A stretch of DNA of 64,000 nt. It comes from Lepidodermella squamata (lineage: Eukaryota; Animalia; Gastrotricha). The DNA lies in NCBI GenBank assembly GCA_047495785.1, contig JBLDXI010000054.1, forward strand, positions 3,968,001 to 4,032,000, in the 5' to 3' direction. The position numbers and the translations under genes are program-made. How positions within the stretch are numbered: the stretch's first letter is position 1; every line of letters starts with the position of its first letter. A model generated the notes under the pieces. It was given only the letters and a program-made list of their open reading frames with translations, ran no database searches and had not been told where the DNA came from. This document shows, piece by piece, positions 6,874 through 39,100 of this stretch.

Positions 6874-8877
6874 ATGACTGATATTACGTCGACGTCGCAC
6901 TACACGAGGCAAGGCCAGCTTGGAGCTGGCTCATTTGGCACAGTCAGTAAAATTGTGCGTTCGACAGATCAATCCGTCTACGCGGAAAAAGTGATCAAGG
7001 TTAAGAGTTCGTCCATCTTCTCTCGTCAATCAGTTGCAGTTTCCTTAACAAAAGCTCAGCAAGAGGTTAATTGACCTTCAGCTGAAAAGATGCATTCATT
7101 ATTTCATGAATTGTGCTGTTTATATAGGTTAGCTTGCTGCACCAGTTGACACATCCGAACATCGTCCGAGTTTACAGTTCTTTCATCGGTAAGTTTCTTT
7201 TCGAACCGTAGACTTTCTTTAATCTAAGTCATTATATTTTGTTCTCTATAAGATGATATGGGAAATTTCGTCATAATAATGGAGTTTTGTGAGGAAGGCG
7301 ATATGAATGACATCATTGCCGAGCGCCGAACAGCCGAATCGCCGTTTCCTGAAAAACAAATCAGGCTCTGGCTGCATTGCCTTGCTCATGCTGTCCATTA
7401 TTTGCATGGCAGAAGTATTTTGCACCGAGATATAAAACCCAAGGTTTGAGAAGCTTCTTTTAGTTTTTGCAGTATTCCTCTTTTTATCTGCCAAATGCAT
7501 TTCTTGCGCGAATTTTTCTAATCACATTAAATTGAACTTTTAACTTTCGATCAGAAAACTAAAGTGTTGACTGTTGTTCACAGAACGTATTTCTTTCATT
7601 CGATCGAAATACTGCTAAACTTGGCGATTTCGGCATAGCAAAAGTATTGGATGAATGCAAGCCAGTGTGCAATACGGGAGAGGGCACTTGGGCATATTCG
7701 GCACCAGAAGTATTCAAATCAGATGGCTATAGTTTCAAGGTCGATGTTTGGAGCTTGGGCGTTCTGCTATATGAGTTGGTAACGTTTAAGTTGCCTTTCA
7801 GGGGTGGCAACCAGGCACTGCCCTTGCTAATCATGCACGAAAACTACCGTCCAATTGCCGATGGACTCTGTAGCCAGCCACTGTTGATTCTGATCGGGAG
7901 AATGCTGACTAAAGATGTAAACAAGCGTCCGACCATCCAGGAGGTGCTTGATGATCCTTTCTTAACCGTCGTGAAACAGTCACAAGAGAACAGCAGACCA
8001 GCAGCAGGTAGTGTAGTCGATGAGCGGCTGGGATTGCATTCTATTAAACGATCGCAGCACTTAACGCTCAATGAAAGACAAGTGGTGGCTGACATGATGC
8101 GGGAACAGGGCCTTTCATTTTCCGCATTGCTTGCATTGAGCGCCTCTGAAATAAGCGGAAAATTTCCACAAGATCTTGCATCAACTGTTGTTGCAATGGT
8201 GGAAAAGGAGAGGGCGGCCAGCGGTACGAGAAGTCAGCAGAGCTATCCAAGACTTACCCAGTCAAGTTCATCCAAACGAGTTAGTAATATTTACCTCCTT
8301 CGCTACTTCTCCAAGTGTAATCATGATTTTGTTTATTTCTTCGAAGCGTCGTGAGAACATGGAGGCGGTCAAGCAATCACTGGCTTTGCCGCCGAGCTAT
8401 CGCGAGATTGTGCTCGACGTAATGGATGATAAAGATTTGGGCTTGCAGGATTTGAGTCAATTGACCGAGGCGACTATTTCAGAACTGTTCCCGTCACCTC
8501 AGCTTAACAGTGCTGTGAGAAAGTTTGCTAGGGAGCTGCAGCAAAGAAATCCATCGAACGGCGAGCGGAGAAGCGAACCCAAAACTGAATCCAAGGTAGA
8601 AGCCGGTATTCCAAGCGTTAGCAAGAGCCATTGCAATTCGAAAGACGTCGCGATAGCGGCAACTGATGCTAAACGAGGATCAAGAGGATCAAGAGGATCC
8701 GTGGAGCCAGAGCCTGATGGAATTACTAACGACAACAGGCACTCTCGCGACAATGACGCCGACGATGGCGCTGATGTGAAGAGAAAACTCTTTGGCGGTG
8801 ACCGTGGAGCGTCTGCGCCATCTATTCGTATCAGGCCGATCAGTCGAACAGCTGAGACTACAGTGAACCAATTTTGA
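6874..8877 (+). CDS. NEK-family Ser/Thr kinase with two C-terminal SAM-like repeats
   Basis: Five exons. Motifs LGAGSFG, VYAEK, EVSLLHQLTHPNIV, IIMEFCEEGD, HRDIKPKNVFL, KLGDFGIAK, GTWAYSAPE, YSFKVDVWSLG. Confidence 0.9.
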
Positions 8878-9012: not shown

Positions 9013-10168
9013 ATGCCGGCTAAAGAAACTCACTGGCCCGAGACCGGTTCGCGGGTAGTGCGCGGCCCATCCTGGAAATGGCAAGATCAAGATGGCGGTG
9101 AAGGTGGCGTCGGAACCATCTTATATTTTGAGAATAATGGCAAAACGGCTTACGTCTGCTGGGACATTTCCGGCGTGACAGGTAGTAATAATCATTTCGA
9201 CCACGCAATATTGTAATTATTTTTGATGATTTGATAGCTGATTATCGCTGCGGACCCGGTAACTACGATTTGCTGATTTTGGATAGCGCGCCTGCAGGTG
9301 TAAAGCATGACGACGTGCTATGTGACGGTTGCGGTCTTGACAACATCGTCGGCATCCGCTGGAAATGCAAAACCTGTTATGACCGGAATCCTGCTTCAAA
9401 CGGCTACGACTTGTGCTCTGAATGCTACCATGGTAATAGGCACGATTTGGATCATACTTTTTTTCGGATTGAACGTGAAGAAAGTGAACCGTAAGATATT
9501 TCCATTCTCAAGCCAAACTTATCTTCATCATGTGGATTGCTTCTACCATCAGATGCCAGCTGGAACCTCGATTAAAATATTACCGCAAACAAGCTAAAGG
9601 GATATTTCCAGGTTCTATTGTTTGTCGAGGACGTCACTGGAAATACGGAGATCAGGATGGGGGCAAAGGAAGAGCTGGTATTGTTCGCAAGTTGGTCGAC
9701 TGGTCCAAGTCTGAAAAAGGCTCTCGTAACGGTGTCATAGTCAAGTGGGCCAATGACATTTCCAACTGCTATCGCCTTGGCGCTGAATTCAGCTCGGATT
9801 TGGTCTCACCAAAGCCCGAAATTGGCATGCTCTATTACAATTCTCATTTGCCGAAATGCGGTAATGCTTTGCATACTTTGCGTACTATTAACACCAGCTG
9901 AAAAGTACTTTCGTACCTATCTCTTCTTCGTCATGCATCATAGGAGCCGCTCGAAATGGCGAGAATAGTAGCGATAGCTCGGTGGATGCTAGAACTGACC
10001 TTTTGGCTGAACTGGTTTGTCTTCTTACATGATTTAATAGTAGTCTAGAAGCTATAGATGGAAAACTTCTGCATGCTATTCTGATAGCATTACTCATTCA
10101 TTCCGCCTATATTTATATTTCAGTTTGCGAAGTTGCTAGTCGGAATGGCTCGCAATGAATCGGGCTAA
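9013..10168 (+). CDS. Stand-alone Mind-bomb MZM protein 2
   Basis: Five exons: [24 protein letters not shown]; [35 protein letters not shown]; [22 protein letters not shown]; [10 protein letters not shown]; last exon [14 protein letters not shown]. Confidence 0.88.
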
Positions 10169-20373: not shown

Positions 20374-23300
20374 ATGGGTACATGTAAGCATGGTGACTAC
20401 TCAGTGTTAATTGTTATTCATATTGTAGTAATTATTTACTCGTTATCAGCCACGCCCAGGTTCTCGTATTTTGGCTGTTGTAGATTACGCAGCTGCTGAA
20501 AAAATGGTTCACAGTGGTCTAGAGCAGTTAGTCGAAGAGTGTCGCAAACGAGGCTTCGATGCCGTCAAGCTTTGCCGCGAATTACAACAGCTCGATGACG
20601 ACTACGTCAGCAAGCAATTCGATTATGATTTCGTCGAACGGGTCTGCGAGGATAATTCCGACTTGAGACTTTCAGATAGGATTGATGCTTTCTGCAGCCA
20701 CTGGGGAAGCAGCAGTTGTAGTAACGAATCTATTTTCTGGGTAATTCAAGCTGCGGAGAACGTTGACAGAGAATTTGCACGTTTCATAGCTAATAAGCTT
20801 CGGAATCAACTAGAAAATCCGGCATCGCCTCTGCAAGATGAAGACGCTAAGGAGGAAATGTTCGAATACATCGAAAAATACACGCCTTTATCCGAAGTTG
20901 TAAGTCCTGTTAAGATAGATAATACAGCAGGTGATACAATTTGTAATAAAAAGGTCACTCTATTGGCGAGCCGACTTGCATCTGGTCCCTCGGGACATGC
21001 GACAAATAAAATATTCCGATGCAACATCCCCTTGCCTTTGCGCAATCATCACGATCGTAAGGAAGTCGACGAAACCATTAAAGGAGCCATCTATCTCCTC
21101 GGCAATGCTTCCAGCCCTGCAACTGTTGTCATTTCAGGCGAAGGAGGTATCGGCAAAACTAGTGCAATTAGCAATTTTGTTTCCAGACCTAGCAGTGATG
21201 AAATTTTCAAGGCTTTGAAAATGACTGCTATCGTTTGGCTGGATGTTTTCGATTTCAAGCGGGAAGATAATTACGACGAGATCGAATTTTTGCAGCGCTT
21301 TGCTGACATAATAGGAGCAAAATATAACCCTGCTAATACGCGCGATCGGCAGGGCTATTTCTCGTCGATTCGAATGGCTCTTGTGAATCGGGCCAAGGCT
21401 ACTGGAAACTTGGCGTTGATAGTTCTTGATAATCTCTACAAACCCGAAATTCTCTGGACCGTGCGAAAAATCAGCAACCAAACTAGGACCTTGGCTATCA
21501 CTAGAGACCCGCTGTCTCTAATAGAACACGATTTGACAAACAATATCATTGGAAACTTGAACATCTCTCCTATTAGTTTGGATGACGCTTGTGCTATGAT
21601 AGGGAAATATCTGTCACCTGAGCTCATTGATCGAGATGGTAAGCTGGAAACGTTGGGAAATTTCTGCAGGGGATTACCGATAATGGCGTCGCTTTTTGCA
21701 GCAATTTTCAGATCGCGAAAGAAAGTTGAACATCACAGCGTATTTGTCGACCTCGTCCAACGACTGAATCAATCACATTCGCTTTCAAGACTTCCGTTCA
21801 CTGAGCAGGAGATGCGATTCAATGATATGCAGCAATTACTTGCATTCAGCTTGGAAATTGAGCGAAAAGCCGAAGTTTATTACCGATTCCTGCTCTTCCA
21901 ACCTGGCTCAACCGTAAAGAGCAGTGAAATGGAAGTGTTATGGGCGACTTCTAACGCGCAGGAAGCTGAGAAAATGTGCGAAGACTTTTGCTTCAAGGGC
22001 CTATTGCGAAAGGTTGCAGATGGTTCCTACACAGTTCATGATCTGTTGTTCGAAGCAGCCTTGAGGCAAGCTCAATTAGGCGAAGACGCCGATAGTTCGA
22101 GAGAAGCTCTCCTCAATCAAACTTTATTCGAATTTGAGGATAAAAAATTCGAAGATAAAACCTTTGAATGTAATCTCTTGAAAACGTGCCTCGATCGGCG
22201 GCTATACCGGTTAATGGAAATTAGCTCGAAATACATTTCGCAAGATGCCTGTGAACGCTTTGTGTCGGATTCTCCCATTCTGCACAAACTTTTCGCCTCT
22301 GCTGAACGATCGGCTATATGGGGCCGCGAGCCAGCCATCTTTTGCTCTATTGTCGGTAAGATGAGTAACGAAGCCATTTCAACCTTGCCAGATTTGGATA
22401 ATCTCCGAGATCACGATGGAAATTACCCTTTGCACTATACAGCTTCAAGAAACGACCTGGAGATGACCAAGAAGCTGCTATCAATCAGCGGCCTGTCGGT
22501 GAATAAAGCTGCGAACGACGGGCAAACTCCATTGCATCTTGCCGTCCGATGGAATAACTTGGTTCTGTTGGAAACGTTGTTGGGAACACCTGGAATTGAT
22601 GTTAACGCTAGGGACAGGCTGGGAGCTACGCCCTTATTTGTCGCCTGCCATTCCGGAAAACCTGATGTGGTTAGAGCCCTGCTGAATTTATGCGATCGAA
22701 TCGATGTAGATTCAGCCGATGAATTCGGGGACACCCCATTGCTCTGTGCCTGCCGGTCGAAGAACGACAGGGCTGTTGAATTGCTGTTGGAATCAAAAAG
22801 GGTTGACATGAACAAGCAGAATGTCTACGGCGGATCTCCACTGCATTATGCATCTCTCGTGGGCGCTGCTCATGCAGTTCGCCTCATTCTACAACAACCG
22901 AACTGTAATGCTTGCCCAGAAGATGAAGATGGCAAATATCCGATTCATCACGCGATGAGGTCAGGATTCACCGAAATTGCTATAATGCTGCGGCGGAATG
23001 GTGGGGATGAATGTCGGGATGGTTGGAATGACCTTCACGCGGCGTGCAGAGCTTCGGAAATTGACAAAGTTCGCAATATTATGGCCGAAAATCCGCATTA
23101 CTGCGCGGCCAAAGACGGGAAAGGACTGCTACCGTTGCATGTCGCAGCTTTCGAGGGTGAAATTCGCATTGTTGAACTCTTGATGCCATATTGTGCAAAG
23201 GAAAACCTGGTTAATCAACGTGATAACAATGGCTGGTTGCCGCTACATTGGGCAGCTTACAAGGGAAGCTTTGAGATCGCCGAGCTTTTGCTAGCCCATG

Positions 23301-23638
23301 CAGGACCCGAGGAAATATCTGCGGCTGATAACTGCGGCAAAACAGTTCTCCATTGGGCTATGAAATCGCGAAATTCAGACATAGTTAGTAAACTGTGCGC
23401 ACTTGGGGTCAACGTCAATGCGGTTGACAAATACGGCAAAAGCGCGCTGCATTGGGCAGCTAGATCAGGGATCGTACCGTCGATCAAAGCGATTATCGCC
23501 ACCGGGCGGGTTGCAGACCTTCGGCAAAAAGATAATTTCGGGAAAACGCCGCTGCAATACGCCCATGACATGGGCTATTTGGAAGCAGTGAACGAGCTGC
23601 TGCGGCCGGAGAGACTCGGCGACGATAGCATGTGGTGA
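20374..23638 (+). CDS. APAF1/CED-4-type NB-ARC protein with ~12 ankyrin repeats and putative N-terminal death-fold domain
   Basis: Walker A GEGGIGKT, Walker B LIVLDN, ITRD, GLPI, VHDL motifs; 12 TPLH-type ankyrin repeats. Probable micro-exon 20374-20383 spliced in frame to 20484. Confidence 0.9.
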
Positions 23639-23788
23639 ATACGAATAATTTTATTGCCTTTTAATACACTTTTTACACAACAATTTCGTCTTAACATGAT
23701 GATGATGATGATGATAATTAAACATGTCGGAATAGTATAATACGAATAATCATATATCACAAGTGGAAAAATATTGCGGTAGAGCATG

Positions 23789-26700
23789 CTACTTATTCTT
23801 CTTGGATTTCTTCGACGACTTGGCGCCTTTCGCCATTTCGGCGCAAACCGGGCAGAACCAGGAGACGTTATCGGGCGGCGCCTCGACCAAGCCAACACAC
23901 GCCCAGTGGAACCACTCGTCGCAGCCGTCGCACTGCACCCACGACGTGTCATCCGCCAGACCGCAGCTCGGGCAAACCACCGAAGACGTCTGTTGCTCGA
24001 CCAGGAGGCCTGCTTCCGCTGGCGGCTGACCGTCCTCAATCGCACCTGCAGACAAGTCCAGGGCTACTACAGATGAAGATTCCGCGGCCATTTCCCGATC
24101 CGATCCGGGCTCGCAGAACGAAGATTGCATCTGAACGGGAGAGAAAATTTATAATAATTTCAGATAATTTGATTAAAGTGGATTCATGGGTGAAATGGTG
24201 GAGTGGGCCAGGCAGGGTTGCAACAACACAACACAGCATAACGATCAAAATCGCCATTTTATTACACGGACAAGTTTGTGAATAGACAAAAGCTGAGCGA
24301 TGTTTGAGCGGCGGCGGCGCACCAAGTGTGCCTGCCTTAAAATTTGAAATGCCGCGCGCATCATGATTTTCTATGAATAAAAGTAACGAAACACCGAATT
24401 CAGAACGATTATGTAACTAGCGCAAATGCGGATCACAATCTTGTATCATTTTCCAGCAGCTTCTTTTGTTGTTGTTGTGTTCGTTCGCGATTCAGTGGTG
24501 GAACTAAGTTTCAAGCACCGAAAAACTTGAGCGATCGGTCCAGACTCGTGGTCGCTACGAATTGAGCCTGGGAACCGAATCGCACACCGGTAGCCAATGC
24601 AGTATGATCAGTAAATGTGCGCAGTTCTTGCCACTGAAAGGAAAAACAGCAAAAATTATAACGTATTCAGCAACGATTTGATAATCTAACCTGTTTGACT
24701 AGGTAAACACGGACGTCAGTTCCACCTACAGCCAGGTAAGTGCCGGAGTTGTCGAAGCACATTGAGCGAATTTCGTACTTTCCACTAACAGCCGTGGCCG
24801 AGTCTTCACCTCCAGGCGTCAGGGTCTTGAAATTTTTCAGTTTTCTCAAGTCCCACAGCTTCACAACCGAGTCAGTTCCAGCCGTAGCCAGGTAATAGCC
24901 GTTCTCTGAGAAGGCAAGGCAAGTAATCGGACCGCCATGACCCGCGAAGTTCGCTACGTTAGCCTGATCTTTCAAGTCCCACACTTTGACCTTGAAAAAC
25001 AATAATTATATTGATGCTCAATTTTATTAAAGATCGGTTTATATACCTGTGAATCTTCGGTACCAGTGGCGAAAATCAGACCGTCCGGGTGAAACTGGCA
25101 GCAAGTGAGTGGGACCCGGCCATTCGCCTCATCGACGACCTTGGACAGAACACGGCCGCTGCGGATGTCACTGAATGACCACGACGCGTCAGTTGACGAC
25201 GCCAGAACGTAGTCGCCGGTAGGATGAAGGCTGATGCCAGTGACTGCCTGGTCGTGGGCACGCACAACATGAGAGCACTGCGCATCCTTCACCGACCAGA
25301 CGCGGACAGTTTCGTCTGGCGACGCGCTAATCACAACGTCCTCCACCGGGTGGTACACAACACTGGAAACCTGATTTCATACAAAAAACGATTAGTCGTA
25401 TAAATATTAAGGAGGAATTTCTAAAATTAGGAGTATGTTTTTATTTTATCCAAATTAGAATATAGGCTATCTAACCCCAATTAATAAGCGAATTTTCGAG
25501 CTTTTTCGAATTCCAATCTTCCAAATTCCAATATTCCAATCCCTTTTATCCCGCTCACAGATTTTACTATCCAGGAATTTTCAAAAAATTAAGGTTAAAA
25601 TAGCGTGCAGCGTGTATTACGGAATGCGTATTAACACCATTAAATTATAACTTTAGGCTGGATTTTTCATTTTCCGAGTTTCTTTTATAATCAGCGAGCG
25701 CGATCACTTTTTCACGCACGCCTGGGTTCAAAAAGACAATGTCTTGGTCGATACAAAGGAAAAAAGCGATCTTAAATTCTGAGCCTTACAACGTTTTATC
25801 ATTAAATCTTGCCTATAATTCAACTAAAATTTAAGGAATTTTACTGAATTTTCAAGTTGGATTCACATATTTGTTGGGGTACAATGAAAAGTGACCAACC
25901 TTTTTCGAGTGGCCTTTGAGCACAGCAACCACCTGTTGCGTCTCCTTGTTGAAAACCGCAATGTTTTTGTCGTTGCCGCCGGTTGCGACGCGCGAAGTGT
26001 CGCGGAAGCACAGGTCGAGGCACAGGATGCCAGGCGAGCTGGTGCTGTGCAGGCCGACGTGCGACGCCTGCTGGTTGTACTTCTGAATGTCGTCGGCTGT
26101 CGCCAGGCCTTCCGGAACCGTCTTGCCGCGCTTCTTGCGCTCGCCCGTCAACATACTCGCCATGTCCTGCAGCTTCTTCATCACGTCGTCGCTGATGCCG
26201 ACAACTTCGATGGCGCCGCCGGCTGTTTCGTGGTGGTGGTGGTGGTGCGCGGCCTGGGCGGTAGCCGCCGAGAACGAGTCCGTGATTCCGGCCTGGGGTT
26301 TCAGCGTCGCCAGGGCCTCGCGCGCCGCCGTGACTTCCTTGTTGAGGCGGGCAATGACACGGCACGCGGCGTCGTGTTGGTACAAAGCGTGACTGAGCTC
26401 CTGACGGGCCGTTTGCAGCTGTTGCCGCAGCGTAAACGTGTGCAGCATCACAGCGTCCCACTCGTCCTGCATCATTTTAAGAATCGCCGGAATCGAGGTG
26501 GCCGAGGGCGGGCGCGGCTTGGCAACAGCCGGCGTTTTCACCTCAATGAGCTGTTCGACGGTCAACGACTGGCCATTCACCGGGTCCGTGCCGTTTTCGG
26601 CAATGTACTTCTCGACCAGCCGGCGTTCGAAAATCGTGCCGGAAACCGGCGAGATCACCGGGTGTTCCGGTGTCTCATTGCAAATGCCACAAATCAACGA

Positions 26701-28978
26701 CATATCAACTTGGTAATTAAAAGACTACAACTCGCCTCTATAAAACACACAAAAACAGGTCAGGCCAGTTCGCGTGTACAAAGAGAATCGCAGATCACAG
26801 TTTCCAGACGCATACACAAACATACACCCACAGTGGGGGTAAAAGGGAGGGGCGTTGGGGGTGTTGGATTCATAAAATCGAATGGCGCAATCCTACCTCG
26901 TAATCGAGCGCTCGCTTCTTCACGCCGCTGCCTTGCGACGACGACTGCTTGCGCTTTCGACTGCCCTTGTGACTGTGGTGGTGATGGTGATGGCTTTTGC
27001 CGCTCTTATTGCCCGATCCAGACGGCTCGTCTCCAGACACGAACGGGCTGCTTTCACTGTGTTCGGACCTATCGAACACATATAATTAGAACTAGCATAT
27101 TTGAAGATGGAAAAAACTAACCAGTCGCTTTGATGGGCTGTAGGAATGGGAGATTGAGGTTCAGCCACAGGTTCAGGCTTAGGTGCACCAAATTTGATCT
27201 TCAACTTCAAACCAAAGCCAAGTTTAGGCATAGCAGGTGGCTCAGGCTCAGGCGCAGGCTCTGGTTCAGGTTCAGGTTCAGGCTCTGCGGGCGGCGGGGT
27301 CGGAAGTTTGGCCGGCGATAACGTGAAAGGCTGCTCAGGGGGCGAAAGTTGGAAGGGCGGTGGAGACGGGGCCATTTGAGCTTTCGGCGACTCGGGTGGA
27401 TACCAGTCGACCTCAGCAGATCCGGCGCGATCTCTAGATAGATCCTGCGGCTCATCTTCAAATATATTCGCTGATGGCGGCTCTGCTGGTAGCCCTGCCA
27501 CTTCCTCTGAATAGTTCAGTTTATCGTAACTTGTCACGCTGTTTTCCCCGCTCGGTATCTCAATAGCCTCGCTTATACTTGATTCAGCAGATTTTTCCGG
27601 CAATTTCGGTTCTTCCGCCTCTGGGATAGGAGGTTCTGCCGAGACTGGCGGAGGCGGGGCTGGCGAGGGCGCTTCTGCGATAGGTTTAAACCTGATTTTC
27701 AGGCTTAGCCGCTGCCCTAACGAATGGGCTGTTCCATCTTGAGAAGACTCATTCCCAGACGAATAGCCTGGTAAAGTGGCTGGCGCGATCGGTGTTGAAT
27801 GCTGAATGCCTTGCACCGCAGATTCGTCGATATTGCACACCTCCTTATGAAAATGAGCGGGGTTGTCGTCTGAAATTTCGCCTTCTTCCTTCGACTCAGC
27901 GCGGTCGACAAAATCTGGCGATCGCGTTGTCTGCTCTTGAGTACCCATGTCCGACGTTGACATGGCGCTGATGATTCGGTCCCGCTGCATCGATGTCTCA
28001 TCGACAGCCGAATGCTGGGTGACGTTATTTGCAGGCTCCTCGCCTAATGGGATAGCATCTTCAGTCGCTTCTCGCACAAGGGAAGGCCGGTAGACAGCGA
28101 TGTCTTCTTCAACGCGGCTGAGATCGATGATTTCAGGATGATGCGGCGCTTCTTCCTTCGCCGGCAATATTGGAATTCTGAATTTTATTCGCGGGAATCT
28201 GAGGGCATCTGTGGCTAATTCTTCCGGTTCGACCGGTTTCTCAACTTCCACGGACCTATCACCGGCGGCATTGCTTCCTCTGTGAATGACATCAACTTTA
28301 ATTCAAGCCGAATGAAAATGAAAAAAAAAGCATACAGTCTACTCAGTTTAGGCAATCCTCTGTACGGCCGAACAGCGTGGGACGTGGAGAACCGACGGCC
28401 CATGCTTCCAATTGATAGTTTCTTCGCCAGAGCCTCGGCAGGATGCAACACAGGGTGCTTCTCGCTGCGTAAATTTGTTACAATATCACTTCGAGTCGAT
28501 ATAAGTCAGCATACCTTGGGACCGCGGATTCCGCCTCTGTATCTGAAGACTCATCCTCGTCGCTATCAGAACCGAGAAGGTCGAAGTCCCATGGCTGCAG
28601 CAATTTGTGATGAGAGGTCGATGGTTTCACAGCAGATTCAACGCTGAATTTGAACGGAGGAGCTCGATATGCCCGCAGGAATTCATCAAACTCATTCAAG
28701 TCGAAGCGAACGACTTGCAGAGCCATGACCACATCGTCAAAAATAGGAGACGATCGATTACCTAAATAAATTAGGGCCATATTTCAAGAGAAGGCTCTGA
28801 CTAAAAGCTTACACATGAAAGCAAATTCCAACGCAATGTGTCCCACTTTAGAAATAAATCTCTCCACAAGTTCGGTCAGCACATCCATGGCTGATGACTT
28901 GACGGCATCCCACTGCAGCTGCTTGCATATCTGAGCGATTGCAACCTTGACAAGTTCATGATTTAAATTATCGATCAT
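23789..28978 (-). CDS. TAF3: TFIID subunit TAF3 (histone fold, Pro/Glu-rich linker, C-terminal PHD exon at 23789-24130)
   Basis: N-terminus [38 protein letters not shown]; [38 protein letters not shown]. Phase-0 donor at 26896 is compatible with the phase-0 acceptor at 24131. Confidence 0.85.
24511..26703 (-). CDS. PRPF19: Pre-mRNA processing factor 19 (U-box, coiled coil, WD40)
   Basis: [92 protein letters not shown]. Four exons. Confidence 0.97.
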
Positions 28979-29156
28979 ATTGATTCTACAAAATGACAAA
29001 AATAACATTGGATACCAATTCCGTTTTAGCATTGGTTTATTCTCAGTAAAATAAGCGCAACCGAAGTGAAAATGGATTGTGTCTACTATCACAGACATAA
29101 TGAGATCAAATGACTGAATGATTTATGTTTTTCAGTTAAAAGCATCAAAAAGACGC

Positions 29157-29825
29157 TCAATGCTTGGGTCCTTGCGACGTGTAAAGCTGAGCTGATCGCT
29201 TCTTGTCTATAACTTCCATCTCGCGCAATTTTTGCGATATTTCAGTCTCAATGATTGTACGATATTTGCCTCCTTGGCCGAGCCTCGTCATCTCAGCAAG
29301 GAAACGCCGACGTTCCTCTACTTCGTCGCAGAGTTCGTCGAAGCGGTCGACCTCCTTCTCTTCGACATCATCGTCATCAAAATCGAGATCTTCATACCTC
29401 CGATTCCTCCTTGCTTTTCCCTCTTCGTAAGATTCTATGCCAAAAGCCATGATGTGAGCCAAACGCTCCTTGTCTTCGTCAGTTCTGATTGGTGCGCCGA
29501 CGGTGGGTTTGTAAGCCGGGCGAGTTAAATCCCCGCTTGACAATATTTGCTTCTGAGTTCGCATGCCTCCAGAATAGTTTTTTGGATTCAATACTTTTGG
29601 CGCGGACGAATTAGCACGGGTCTGTTTCTTTGGAGCTCGTTGGGGCGGAGGAGGTAATGACCCAGTTTTTTCGACAGATTCTTTAATCTTTTTTTGCTGT
29701 GCAAATGTCAACTTTGATTCGCGCATAAATTCGCGCAGCAAATTCTTGGTATCTTCACTGTAGTTAACAGGCTTCGAGTCCCATATGCATCCAGTCCGGA
29801 CGATTGCACTTTTGGACGGCTCCAT
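29157..29825 (-). CDS. UPF0193 / EVG1 (C22orf23)-like protein
   Basis: YSEDTKNLLREFMRESKLTFAQQKKI..GSLP; DKERLAHIMAFG; DRFDELCDEVEERRRFLAEM..YRTIIETEISQKLREMEVID. Confidence 0.85.
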   Translation of the reverse strand: MEPSKSAIVRTGCIWDSKPVNYSEDTKNLLREFMRESKLTFAQQKKIKESVEKTGSLPPPPQRAPKKQTRANSSAPKVLNPKNYSGGMRTQKQILSSGDLTRPAYKPTVGAPIRTDEDKERLAHIMAFGIESYEEGKARRNRRYEDLDFDDDDVEEKEVDRFDELCDEVEERRRFLAEMTRLGQGGKYRTIIETEISQKLREMEVIDKKRSAQLYTSQGPKH

Positions 29826-36125: not shown

Positions 36126-39100
36126 GGTGCATCGCCTGAAAAAAGAAGGCCACAAGAATATGCGGTGTGGGAACATTTACTCGTTGTGAACCAGATCTAT
36201 ATCTATGGAAATGAATAAATTTCATAGGCGTGCACAGTCTACGTTCGTTGATACAATTCGTAATTTTTTGCATTAATCGGTCGTGGAGCGTTGTGTTCTT
36301 TTACGTGAATACTGCTACTATATTCAGATGAAGTCGATAATGATGATGATGATGATGACGACGACGATTCCACTGTACGCTAATAAAAGCCATTACTACT
36401 CGTACGACTTTTTTGACGGGTTCACTTTTTCTCGTGCATTTGTTTACTAGGTATCTTCTTGATGTATTTTGAGAAGATTTTCTCGGCTTAGCAGGCAGCG
36501 GCTCGAGGCCGTGTATTCTCGTCACGCCGCAAGTCTATAATTAGCTGGCAGTACGTGATTTTTGTATACAACACTAGTTATTTTTTGTCGGCAGCTTTCA
36601 GCGGCGTGCACTGATTGCTGAGTAGTAGCAGCTGACGATGCAAACACGCGTCACTTGGGACGGGTGGTCAGATTTATCGGCTGCCGTCGTCGATTCCTCC
36701 CCTCCCCTTCCCTTCCTCCAATCCAAGTTTGTTTAACCAAGGATGCAAAGCCTCGCGATGTTGTTGTTGTTGTTTGCGGCGGCGGCTATGTGTTTAATGA
36801 TTTCTAATTGGTATTGACTTTCCGCTTGTAGCGCGCGTCTCGCTGCGATTTCTCGCCGGCGAAAACGGTCTTCTAACAACATTGATTTGTTGCATTTCTC
36901 AATATTACAAACACATGATATAAAATGATTTCTGTAATGGCCATCGAATACAGGGATAGCGGGTGGGTGGGTATCATCTTCATGCCGGCGCCGGCGGGTG
37001 TGGCGTTTTCGACGACTAGCGGGCGATGCATTCGCTTATTTGCATTCGCTATCACCATAATAGCAGGCATCATCAGCATTGGTAATGTAGTAGCTACTGC
37101 TGAGAAGAGGAACGCGCGCGAGTCGATAAACGAGACAGTCGCGCGTGTGCTGACTAAGATTGTCGCTGTTTTCATTTCGATTGGTCTGCTGCTGCTGCTG
37201 CTGCTGTATACTGCCTCCCACGCTCGATCGTCGCGCGATGGGCAGTGGCGAGCGACTCGGCATGAAATTCGACCAATAACAATTACGCACGACACAGCAC
37301 AGCACTAATAAATAGAATTTTGACTATATTTATAGTATGCCTACGCTGCCGTAGTAGTAGCATTGCTGGGCGCGTGGTCCTCGGCTGCCTTCTCCTCGTC
37401 CTCCTCATTTTGTGCTTGACAAGAAGATATAGCATATTATAGGCGATATGCAGTGTGCAATGTCGAACGTCAACAACTCTCCGCGCATTATTTGCGCCGT
37501 ATTTCGCAAAATACAGCCTTGTTTGTGTTTTCGGCGTTGCTTTGCCATCGATCTGCCGCCTCGAAGCAGTCGTAGCGGCAGCAATATTACTACTATTTCG
37601 CCCCATGCATTTTGCCTAAATGCTTTGTAGCATGTATTATTATTATTATTATTACGCAAGGTAGTAGGGGTAGTACTGTCCACGCTGGCCATCGATTCGC
37701 CTCGGCCGATCGATAAACTTCGAATTTTTGAAAGTTGCTGCCCATAAGAGCCGCTGATTCGCCGTAGCCGTATTGACTTTCGATGCTTTCTCTTCCTTTA
37801 CGTCGCATGATGTATATATGTGTTTCTGCCTGACTCGCGAGCAGAAAATATATAAATATATAATAATAACTAGTATAGGCGTGGTAGTAGTAGTAGCACA
37901 GTAATAGTGATGATGATAGTAAAATACTAGCCGGCCAACCACATTTTCTGTGAAATAATTTCGCCATACATGCATAGAACACATATATATCGCAATAATG
38001 ACTGAACAAGGTTACCACTGCGCGGCTTCACTTCGTAATTTCAACGCTGTCCCACGGGGCCATACAAATGGAGACACGCTCGTTGTCCAGTCAGTCTTCG
38101 CCATTTCCAGCGACCACACCAGCTCGAAGTTGTCGACCATTTGCCGTAGTCAATAATAAAACGTGTCTGCAGATTGCCCTCCGAGGACTCGCACCGCCTA
38201 TTCCCCGACGAACTTTACAACCGCACTAGATTTCGTTATTTGTAGGTGTACGATTTAATTTATGTAATCCTTCCTAAAACTCTTACGAACCTGTGCGCAG
38301 TAAATAACGACGCGTTATTTGCTTCTTGTTATTTACGCATCTCTTATTTTTTGCATGAATATTTTTGGACTAGTTACGCGAAGTGCACTTCGTCAGCCAC
38401 AACAATCTTTAATTATCCGCAAAAGTTACAACCCACCTTCTGCTCTCCATATATCTCTGGCTCGGTACCATGTTTACTTGTTTTCATTACAACACTTTGT
38501 TTATAGGCTGCATTGAGAGGTTAGTTCGGCAAACAATCAAAACGAGTATACACACTGATTGGTCATAGTAGCTGCTTGTTATAATAATCGATATAGGAAA
38601 CGGCAACTTTACTTCGGCATTTCGGTATTTTATCATTCACTAGCTCTGCTTAGGTATTACTTTAATAGCACACACACACAAGCCGTTTCGCCAAAGGCGC
38701 GGCCCGAATAACGATCACTGATCAGGCCGGTGTGATAGCTGTAAACTGGCGCCGTTATAATGCGCCGTGTAGTCGATCAGCGAATCGAGCGCCAACATCA
38801 TCGCCGGCTTTGTTTCGGCAAACAACAACAGTAAACGCTGCATTTCCTGCCGAAATTGCAATAATTATTTTACCGCAAAAAAGTGACTCCGGCGACGACG
38901 GATTATTCTGCACCTAAGTTGAGCATATCCTTCACGACCACCGTTTTTTTATTAATTTTTCGGCTCTGAAAATTAATATTCGATTTTGTTGCGGTTGCGT
39001 GCCTCGATTGTAGTAACTATTCGCCGATTTGCATTCGTCGTCTTCATCAGAGCCGTCGTTATTTTATATTGCTGCTTGTCATCATACCATATTCCAATGC

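Follow-up and report, generated by a model that had tools for sequence, protein, structure and literature searches.

Host/nested gene pairs, in which one gene lies within an intron of another, are known in Drosophila and C. elegans as well as in mammals. Those of mouse and human have been catalogued, the nested genes favouring long 5′ introns of their hosts and the two orientations being 'broadly similar' (PMC11694760). In the cholinergic locus, VAChT/unc-17 occupies the first intron of ChAT/cha-1 in nematodes, flies and mammals (PMC3053374), and in imprinted or retrogene host pairs, for example Mcts2/H13, activity of the nested gene causes premature polyadenylation of the host (cited in PMC11694760). 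The present analysis concerns a stretch of 64,000 nucleotides (nt) from the gastrotrich Lepidodermella squamata (assembly GCA_047495785.1, contig JBLDXI010000054.1, positions 3,968,001 to 4,032,000), called the window below and numbered from its first letter, in which PRPF19 and TAF3 very probably form such a pair, with PRPF19 complete and provided with its own polyadenylation (poly(A)) site inside the phase-0 last intron of TAF3. Both genes lie on the same strand; the statement of an initial annotation of this DNA that same-strand nesting is rare is overstated, given the similar orientations in mouse and human.

As in other host/nested pairs, the nested gene is contained in a single host intron, the host is spliced across it, and a separate mRNA with a poly(A) site of its own is made from the nested gene; interference of its 3′ processing with completion of the host is expected, here as there. 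The differences are of position and scale: unlike the mammalian nested genes, PRPF19 sits in the last intron, 113 nt 5′ of the host terminal exon, the arrangement is compact (an intron of 2.8 kb and a putative promoter space of less than 200 nt), and the interruption of TAF3 separates its chromatin-reader domain from the body. The cholinergic locus is alike in that same-strand nesting is conserved across great evolutionary distances and transcription of the host traverses the nested gene, but its genes are functionally linked, share 5′ exons or promoters and yield either product by alternative splicing. At TAF3/PRPF19 neither a shared exon nor an alternative junction is seen in the RNA contigs; here the nesting is 3′, and TAF3 (TFIID) and PRPF19 (nineteen complex, NTC, of the spliceosome) have no obvious pathway step in common. 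With pairs of the Mcts2/H13 type the locus shares an internal same-strand poly(A) site that could truncate TAF3 before its last exon, but no truncated TAF3 isoform is seen, and PRPF19 is no obvious retrogene, since it has three introns, two of them common to a relative. A literature search for TAF3 together with PRPF19 found no mention of the two.

Contigs of three public runs (X1, X2 and X3) were aligned to positions 23550–29500. X1 and X3 are RNA, as seven introns are skipped with GT..AG ends, depth within introns falls to zero, and contigs carry a cDNA adaptor and a poly-T tail; X2 is DNA-like, with no joints, contigs of up to 130 kb and a divergence of 1–3% from the window. Domain calls were taken from Pfam and the closest solved structures from PDB, and relatives were sought by a protein search (5.8 billion proteins), by an exhaustive profile-free search and by a word-indexed search with the PHD exon. 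The window has a GC content of about 45%, and the published gastrotrich assembly one of 43% (PMC11660948). All relevant genes are on the minus strand, a six-exon TAF3 gene (737 amino acids, aa) hosting a four-exon PRPF19 gene (516 aa) in its last intron, with the following features (UTR, untranslated region).

28813–28985, minus strand: TAF3 exon 1, with the ATG at 28978 and the N-terminal histone fold (Pfam, PDB).
28515–28761, minus strand: TAF3 exon 2; RNA joints 28757/28809 and 28464/28515, GT..AG.
28336–28464, minus strand: TAF3 exon 3; 3′ boundary placed from the reading frame.
27122–28279, minus strand: TAF3 exon 4, the long low-complexity body, an open frame.
26897–27068, minus strand: TAF3 exon 5, ending KKRALDYE at a phase-0 donor; RNA joints 27120/27066 and 26897/24130.
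24131–26896, minus strand: TAF3 last intron, 2,766 nt, GT..AG, phase 0, holding the whole of PRPF19; X1 RNA joint.
26738–26896, minus strand: interval from the TAF3 donor to the acceptor-like site before PRPF19, 159 nt, C-rich, without a poly(A) signal (from sequence); it could be a promoter or an outron.
24511–26703, minus strand: PRPF19 coding region, exons 26703–25900, 25370–25047, 24990–24691 and 24633–24511; RNA joints for all three introns.
24244–24510, minus strand: PRPF19 3′ UTR, AATAAA at 24263–24258, poly(A) site at about 24244.
24131–24243, minus strand: spacer from the PRPF19 poly(A) site to the PHD-exon acceptor, 113 nt, with a GT-rich stretch, a C-rich stretch and a pyrimidine tract (from sequence).
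23789–24130, minus strand: TAF3 exon 6, with the MQSSF start, a linker, the PHD finger, a Lys-rich tail and the stop; Pfam PHD 1.5e-9.
23630–23788, minus strand: TAF3 3′ UTR, AATAAA at 23655–23650; an X1 contig extends to 23667.

The initial annotation had placed PRPF19 within a TAF3 intron on the same strand, and this is borne out by the translation of the exons and by the RNA joint 26897|24130. The TAF3 body ends, as it had described, at a phase-0 donor (GAT TAC GAG|GTAGGA, exon end 26897, GT 26896–26895); a complete PRPF19 follows, whose AATAAA, expected near 24260, is present at 24263–24258; and then comes a phase-0 exon (TTCAG|ATG at 24131|24130) coding for a PHD finger whose best solved match is indeed that of TAF3. 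The junction 26897→24130 that this predicts is found in an RNA-derived contig of X1 (record 1; 841 nt, depth 27), which covers 23667–24130, then 26897–27066, and runs on past the intron 27069–27121. The joint skips 2766 nt with CT..AC ends (GT..AG on the gene strand), with 170 nt on its shorter side and 2 ambiguous letters. Both the PRPF19 ATG (26703) and its poly(A) site (24244) are thus intronic, and the flanking TAF3 exons are joined in RNA. Because mature RNA joins TAF3 exon 5 to the PHD exon, RNA polymerase must traverse all of PRPF19, and TAF3 mRNA results from removal of the entire PRPF19 gene with the intron; the encoded protein is canonical, its histone fold N-terminal and its PHD finger C-terminal. 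The RNA of PRPF19 is separate, with its own three introns spliced and its own polyadenylation at about 24244: an X3 contig ends at 24244 and is followed by 22 T, and an X1 contig starts at 24246, both 14–19 nt past the AATAAA. Phase 0 is shared by the host intron and all three PRPF19 introns, so that use of any internal PRPF19 acceptor by the TAF3 donor would create an in-frame TAF3–WD40 fusion; in the RNA contigs the donor is not seen joined to the internal acceptors 25370, 24990 or 24633.

The identity of the host is clear at its two ends. The coding exons of TAF3 (28978–28813, 28761–28515, 28464–28336, 28279–27122, 27068–26897 and 24130–23789) form a 737-aa model with no internal stop, in which the intron 28812–28762 is confirmed by an RNA joint and an extra intron of 56 nt (28335–28280, GTATGC..CACAG), a size typical of introns here, is placed from the reading frame, no RNA contig lying over it, and restores a single frame. 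Exon 1 carries Bromo_TP (Pfam PF07524, E 7e-9), and its best PDB match is human TAF3 residues 3–47 (E 4e-6), TAF8 reaching only 0.15; exon 4 has weak similarity to a 497-aa open reading frame (ORF) of a relative. The joining of exon 5 in frame to the PHD exon in the RNA contig puts histone fold and PHD finger on one polypeptide. The ATG is preceded by a pyrimidine tract and an acceptor-like AG (28987–28986). One X1 contig has a 22-nt cDNA-synthesis adaptor right after 28983, 2 nt inside of this AG; its orientation and the absence of a GGG linker are unlike a standard template-switch junction.

The last TAF3 exon is in phase 0, has 113 codons with the stop at 23791–23789, and opens with ATG CAA TCT TCG TTC (MQSSF) after TTCAG. 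The best solved relatives of its PHD finger are the TAF3 PHD structures (9e-17 to 7e-15), the next family being PHF2 (5e-8), and the match aligns to human TAF3 866–924 of 929 aa, that is to its extreme C-terminus, where a Lys-rich tail follows, as it does in the window. Among the six top single-PHD matches of the exhaustive profile-free search, examined with Pfam, four have an N-terminal Bromo_TP and a C-terminal PHD in one long protein. In the alignment of the pocket the second Trp (DEWFHW) is kept, the opening Trp of the human protein is replaced by Val (23978–23980), and a Met 14 residues further on is replaced by Trp (23942–23944); the two altered positions are presumably part of the methyl-lysine pocket. 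Both changes are also present in the relative described below (L001 12139–12279), and the methyl-lysine cage may be re-arranged. As a separate observation, an X2 DNA contig matches only the PHD core (23817–23988), at 90% or more, with unlike flanks of 49 letters before 23817 and 255 behind 23988, and X2 depth is twofold in the bin of that core. There may be a second copy elsewhere in the genome, or a divergent haplotype; inside the window no second copy of the core was found. An exact-product look-up of the 113-aa PHD ORF and of the neighbouring UPF0193 protein found neither on record.

PRPF19 reads from the ATG at 26703 to a TGA stop at 24513–24511 through three phase-0 introns. Pfam gives a U-box of 26.1 bits (cut-off 21.4) and Prp19 at 7e-33, the WD40_Prp19 model is covered across the four exons (model positions 1–51, 57–159, 159–249 and 250–281), and exon 1 is collinear with human PRPF19 residues 1–266 (PDB, E about 1e-109). 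Intron 1 (25371–25899) is 529 nt long, introns here usually being about a tenth of that, and the RNA contigs show it removed; the relative lacks it, its exon 1 being continuous through KGHTKKVTNVVYHP, and the intron is a lineage-specific gain or loss. A transposon or 'introner' origin was discarded, as the window contains no further copy of the intron and terminal inverted repeats are absent. An antisense ORF of 409 aa (25891–27120) matches no Pfam family and was rejected as a gene; it is probably a by-product of the GC-rich coding sequence opposite.

The gene upstream of TAF3 enters into the comparison with other genomes:

29157–29825, minus strand: UPF0193 gene, a single exon, the upstream same-strand neighbour (Pfam PF05250, E 7e-55).

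The closest PRPF19 in the protein search, P0001, has an identity of about 78–79% and comes from contigs L001 and L002 of two metagenome samples, which are 99.9% identical to each other. On both contigs the order UPF0193, Bromo_TP/TAF3 body, PRPF19, PHD ORF is found on one strand. In L001 the penultimate TAF3 exon ends KKNRAAVDYQ|GT in phase 0, PRPF19 starts 187 nt on, and TTTCAG|ATG CAG AGT TCG TTT (MQSSF) lies 129 nt past the PRPF19 AATAAA (127 nt in the window). The synteny check that the initial annotation had suggested therefore comes out in favour of the nesting, with the same gene order, phase-0 donor and CAG|ATG exon start in a distant relative: amino-acid identity is 60% for UPF0193, 57% for the TAF3 histone fold, 79% for the PHD finger and 79% for PRPF19, and non-coding sequence is essentially unalignable. 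Conservation of the motif KK.RA.DY[EQ]|MQSSF extends to either side of the junction but not into the adjoining linkers, a pattern that fits selection on the joined TAF3 protein. The interval from the TAF3 donor to PRPF19 is comparable in the relative, with acceptor-like AGs 16–26 nt 5′ of its ATG. Two further PRPF19 loci, at 63% identity, adjoin LYAR, and no TAF3 parts were found near either, so that the nesting is lineage-specific. Exhaustive search gave no other close relatives, and the word search with the PHD exon gave one relative only.

How both products could arise from one strand may be outlined as follows. For TAF3, the transcript would have to escape cleavage at the PRPF19 poly(A) site, and splicing would have to pass over four same-phase acceptors within the host intron. 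For PRPF19, RNA depth over 26738–26896 is zero in X1 and X3, and the PRPF19 contigs have depths of 128–250; a long unspliced 5′ UTR is thus lacking, and the mRNA would start about 50–80 nt or less from the ATG. The bin depths imply that X1 coverage of PRPF19 ends at 26689, with none over 26690–26896 (100.1 = 128.5 × 155/199; 4.88 = 27 × 36/199). The start could be a small promoter in the 159-nt interval or, if that interval serves as an outron in the sense of PMC5737717, spliced-leader trans-splicing at the acceptor 26738. In X1 the PRPF19 contigs are about 5–10 times deeper than those of TAF3, contig depth being a poor measure of level.

Several points weigh against the reading of PRPF19 as an independent gene nested in TAF3. 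The RNA basis consists of assembled contigs from one small transcriptome and a second, very small one; contigs can miss rare isoforms, and RNA ends and levels are not readable from them. The contigs end at 26689, 14 nt inside the PRPF19 coding sequence, where an own promoter and processing of the host transcript are not separable. Conservation rests on one relative lineage. Finally, a strong-looking acceptor, 26738, lies 159 nt past the TAF3 donor and is apparently unused in cis, which wants explanation: in the outron experiments of Conrad and Blumenthal, a nematode acceptor with an upstream donor was reportedly cis-spliced as a rule. Its non-use in cis could have causes such as nonsense-mediated decay of the product, rapid leader trans-splicing or a hidden weakness of the site.

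Among the alternatives, an artefact of genome misassembly or of a chimeric RNA contig is hardly credible. The published gastrotrich assembly used multiple displacement amplification, which makes chimeras (PMC11660948), and nearby X1 contigs contain 'opposite strands' joints; against this, the order is repeated in two independent metagenome assemblies of the relative and in the DNA run X2 (1–3% divergent), a contig of which is collinear over 25760–27491, and these agreements rule out misassembly, while the RNA joint falls exactly at a phase-0 GT..AG pair and yields a canonical TAF3 architecture. It is scarcely more plausible that the TAF3 body and the PHD exon are transcribed apart and brought together by trans-splicing between two RNA molecules, as is known for mod(mdg4) or eri-6/7: contigs cannot tell cis from trans joining, but the parts are on the same strand, collinear and 2.8 kb apart, ordinary cis-splicing is enough, and no separate promoter is evident for the PHD exon. 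The initial annotation had also entertained a split TAF3, with the PHD exon as a separate cistron; such a cistron, existing alongside the joined form or predominating over it, would be leader-spliced at CAG|ATG and would give a free 113-aa PHD protein. The exon does begin exactly with an ATG after the acceptor, MQSSF is conserved in both species, and the exon lies about 113–135 nt past a poly(A) site, like a downstream gene of an operon. It is seen, however, joined to the TAF3 body in an unbranched RNA contig of equal depth and not as a separate RNA (contigs may hide rare forms), the motif conserved across the junction fits selection on a fused protein, elsewhere the TAF3 PHD is on the same chain, and, as weaker evidence, the 113-aa product is not on record, so that this alternative is not borne out and seems improbable. 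More improbable again is the switch proposed there, in which the TAF3 donor is joined to 26738 and a PHD-less TAF3 and PRPF19 share a bicistronic mRNA, coupling splicing capacity with the reading by TFIID of histone H3 trimethylated at lysine 4. The splice-site geometry exists as it had been described, with the acceptor at 26739–26738 and a product of 630 aa ending DYERRVVVF*, whose stop lies 13 nt from the PRPF19 ATG, and the acceptor-like sites of the relative also meet stops soon past the junction (by eye); stops are nevertheless expected by chance in an AT-rich 5′ UTR. No 26897→26737 joint is seen in the RNA contigs, which for this claim come from a single transcriptome, the contig over 26897|24130 is unbranched, with a depth of 27 as in the upstream TAF3 exon, RNA depth between donor and acceptor is zero, and no retained-intron TAF3 form (read-through of the donor 26896) occurs in the contigs. 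Neither species has an AATAAA or ATTAAA between the TAF3 donor and the PRPF19 ATG, so that the short TAF3 would be possible only as the first cistron of a TAF3–PRPF19 mRNA. Such an mRNA would be a target of nonsense-mediated decay, and for that reason could be scarce in steady-state RNA, and it would be a poor template for PRPF19. Translation of an essential, abundant protein as a second cistron would be inefficient, which weighs further against the switch. The RNA negatives lower both the switch and the split readings.

A more serious alternative, which can be entertained tentatively, is that UPF0193, TAF3 and PRPF19 form one precursor of operon type, from which PRPF19 is released by leader trans-splicing at 26738 and cleavage at 24244. 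Equally tentative is its corollary that cis-splicing (for TAF3) and trans-splicing (for PRPF19) compete on each precursor, the last exon of TAF3 lying beyond the next cistron. As in the leader-resolved operons of nematodes, tunicates, flatworms and rotifers, the genes form a tight same-strand cluster with an acceptor-like site before each ATG, and the acceptor that follows UPF0193, like the one that follows PRPF19, comes about 100 nt after a poly(A) signal. The gaps are short (176 nt from the UPF0193 stop to the TAF3 ATG, about 190 nt before PRPF19), and the cluster is kept in the relative; in both species the ATG of TAF3, that of PRPF19 and that of the PHD exon each have a pyrimidine-tract/AG site just 5′ of them; the distance from poly(A) signal to next acceptor is about 50–130 nt, the AATAAA of UPF0193 lying about 50 nt before the acceptor-like site that fronts TAF3; L001 has the UPF0193 neighbour at 7174–7824 with the same AATAAA/pyrimidine-tract/AG anatomy before TAF3; and the host precursor demonstrably spans PRPF19. 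The locus is unlike such operons in that the PHD 'cistron' is cis-spliced to the gene two positions upstream, that the 3′-end signal present before the other two downstream acceptors is absent between TAF3 exon 5 and PRPF19, contrary to a standard intercistronic region, and that no leader is observed on any of the three genes: the RNA contigs have no leader-bearing loose ends at 26737, 24130 or 28985, the leader sequence itself not being to hand. The deeper PRPF19 contigs, a weak measure, are most simply attributed to a promoter of its own. A literature search for gastrotrichs together with spliced leaders found nothing relevant. The strongest form of the idea, that PRPF19 has no promoter of its own and is leader-trans-spliced at 26738 from a UPF0193/TAF3 precursor, in a conserved interleaved operon whose cis/trans ratio PRPF19 itself could sway, is unlikely. 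If it held, each precursor would give either PHD-bearing TAF3 or PRPF19, and TAF3 output would need both cis-splicing across 2.8 kb and read-through of the PRPF19 poly(A) site. Since the acceptor 26738 is part of the host precursor, its use by a leader would mean that each such precursor goes either to TAF3, in cis, or to PRPF19, in trans; the alternative would then follow from the layout and would not amount to a demonstrated switch.

Strings resembling the nematode leader SL1 (TTTAATTACC.AAGTT.GA) occur just 5′ of the PRPF19 ATG in the window (26705–26721) and in L001 (about 9975–9992), the former being the best local match to SL1 in the window (score 28, against 24 for the next). A relic spliced leader was rejected, as the orthologous site comes only about fifth among the matches in the relative and a similar CCAAGTTTG string stands before another ATG of the window (about 36722–36735); the string before PRPF19 may be a coincidence or a 5′-UTR or initiator motif of the lineage. 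C-rich CCCCTCCC-like elements lie near both ends of the host intron (window 26840–26869 and 24195–24215; L001 9854 and 11891), and CCCCTCCC has only two exact copies in the 16-kb L001, one per intron flank. Direct repeats of target-site-duplication type or a C-rich motif pair flanking PRPF19 were nevertheless discarded, the alignment of the flanks being no better than shuffles (p 0.22 and 0.57), as was an RNA duplex of the intron ends that would loop out PRPF19, which is not above shuffles in the window and borderline (0.04) in L001. No Rfam family was found in the window or in the host intron. Runs of HHHHHH occur in the PRPF19 linker (26225–26242), in TAF3 exon 5 (26975–26992) and, in the relative, after the PHD finger (L001 12310–12370). 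Beyond TAF3, a plus-strand ORF at 20471–23638 codes for a single-ORF ankyrin-repeat protein of 1,055 aa with a weak, sub-threshold NB-ARC match and converges on TAF3; about 20 nt or less separate its stop at 23638 from the TAF3 poly(A) signal, the two genes probably overlap at their 3′ ends, and the X1 'opposite strands' joints fall at 23550–23655. L001, too, has an ankyrin ORF past the PHD exon, but on the TAF3 strand.

In summary, TAF3/PRPF19 is an RNA-supported, conserved, same-strand nested pair in a poorly studied phylum, and as an arrangement it is of a known kind; nothing so far supports a coupling between chromatin reading by TFIID and splicing capacity. The locus also bears on annotation, since automatic gene prediction will probably report an orphan 113-aa PHD protein here, along with a TAF3 that lacks the PHD finger. 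To obtain its chromatin-reader domain, TAF3 must read through a functional poly(A) site 113 nt before the exon that encodes it, and the locus is thereby a compact natural test case for the order of splicing, polyadenylation and, possibly, leader trans-splicing on one precursor.

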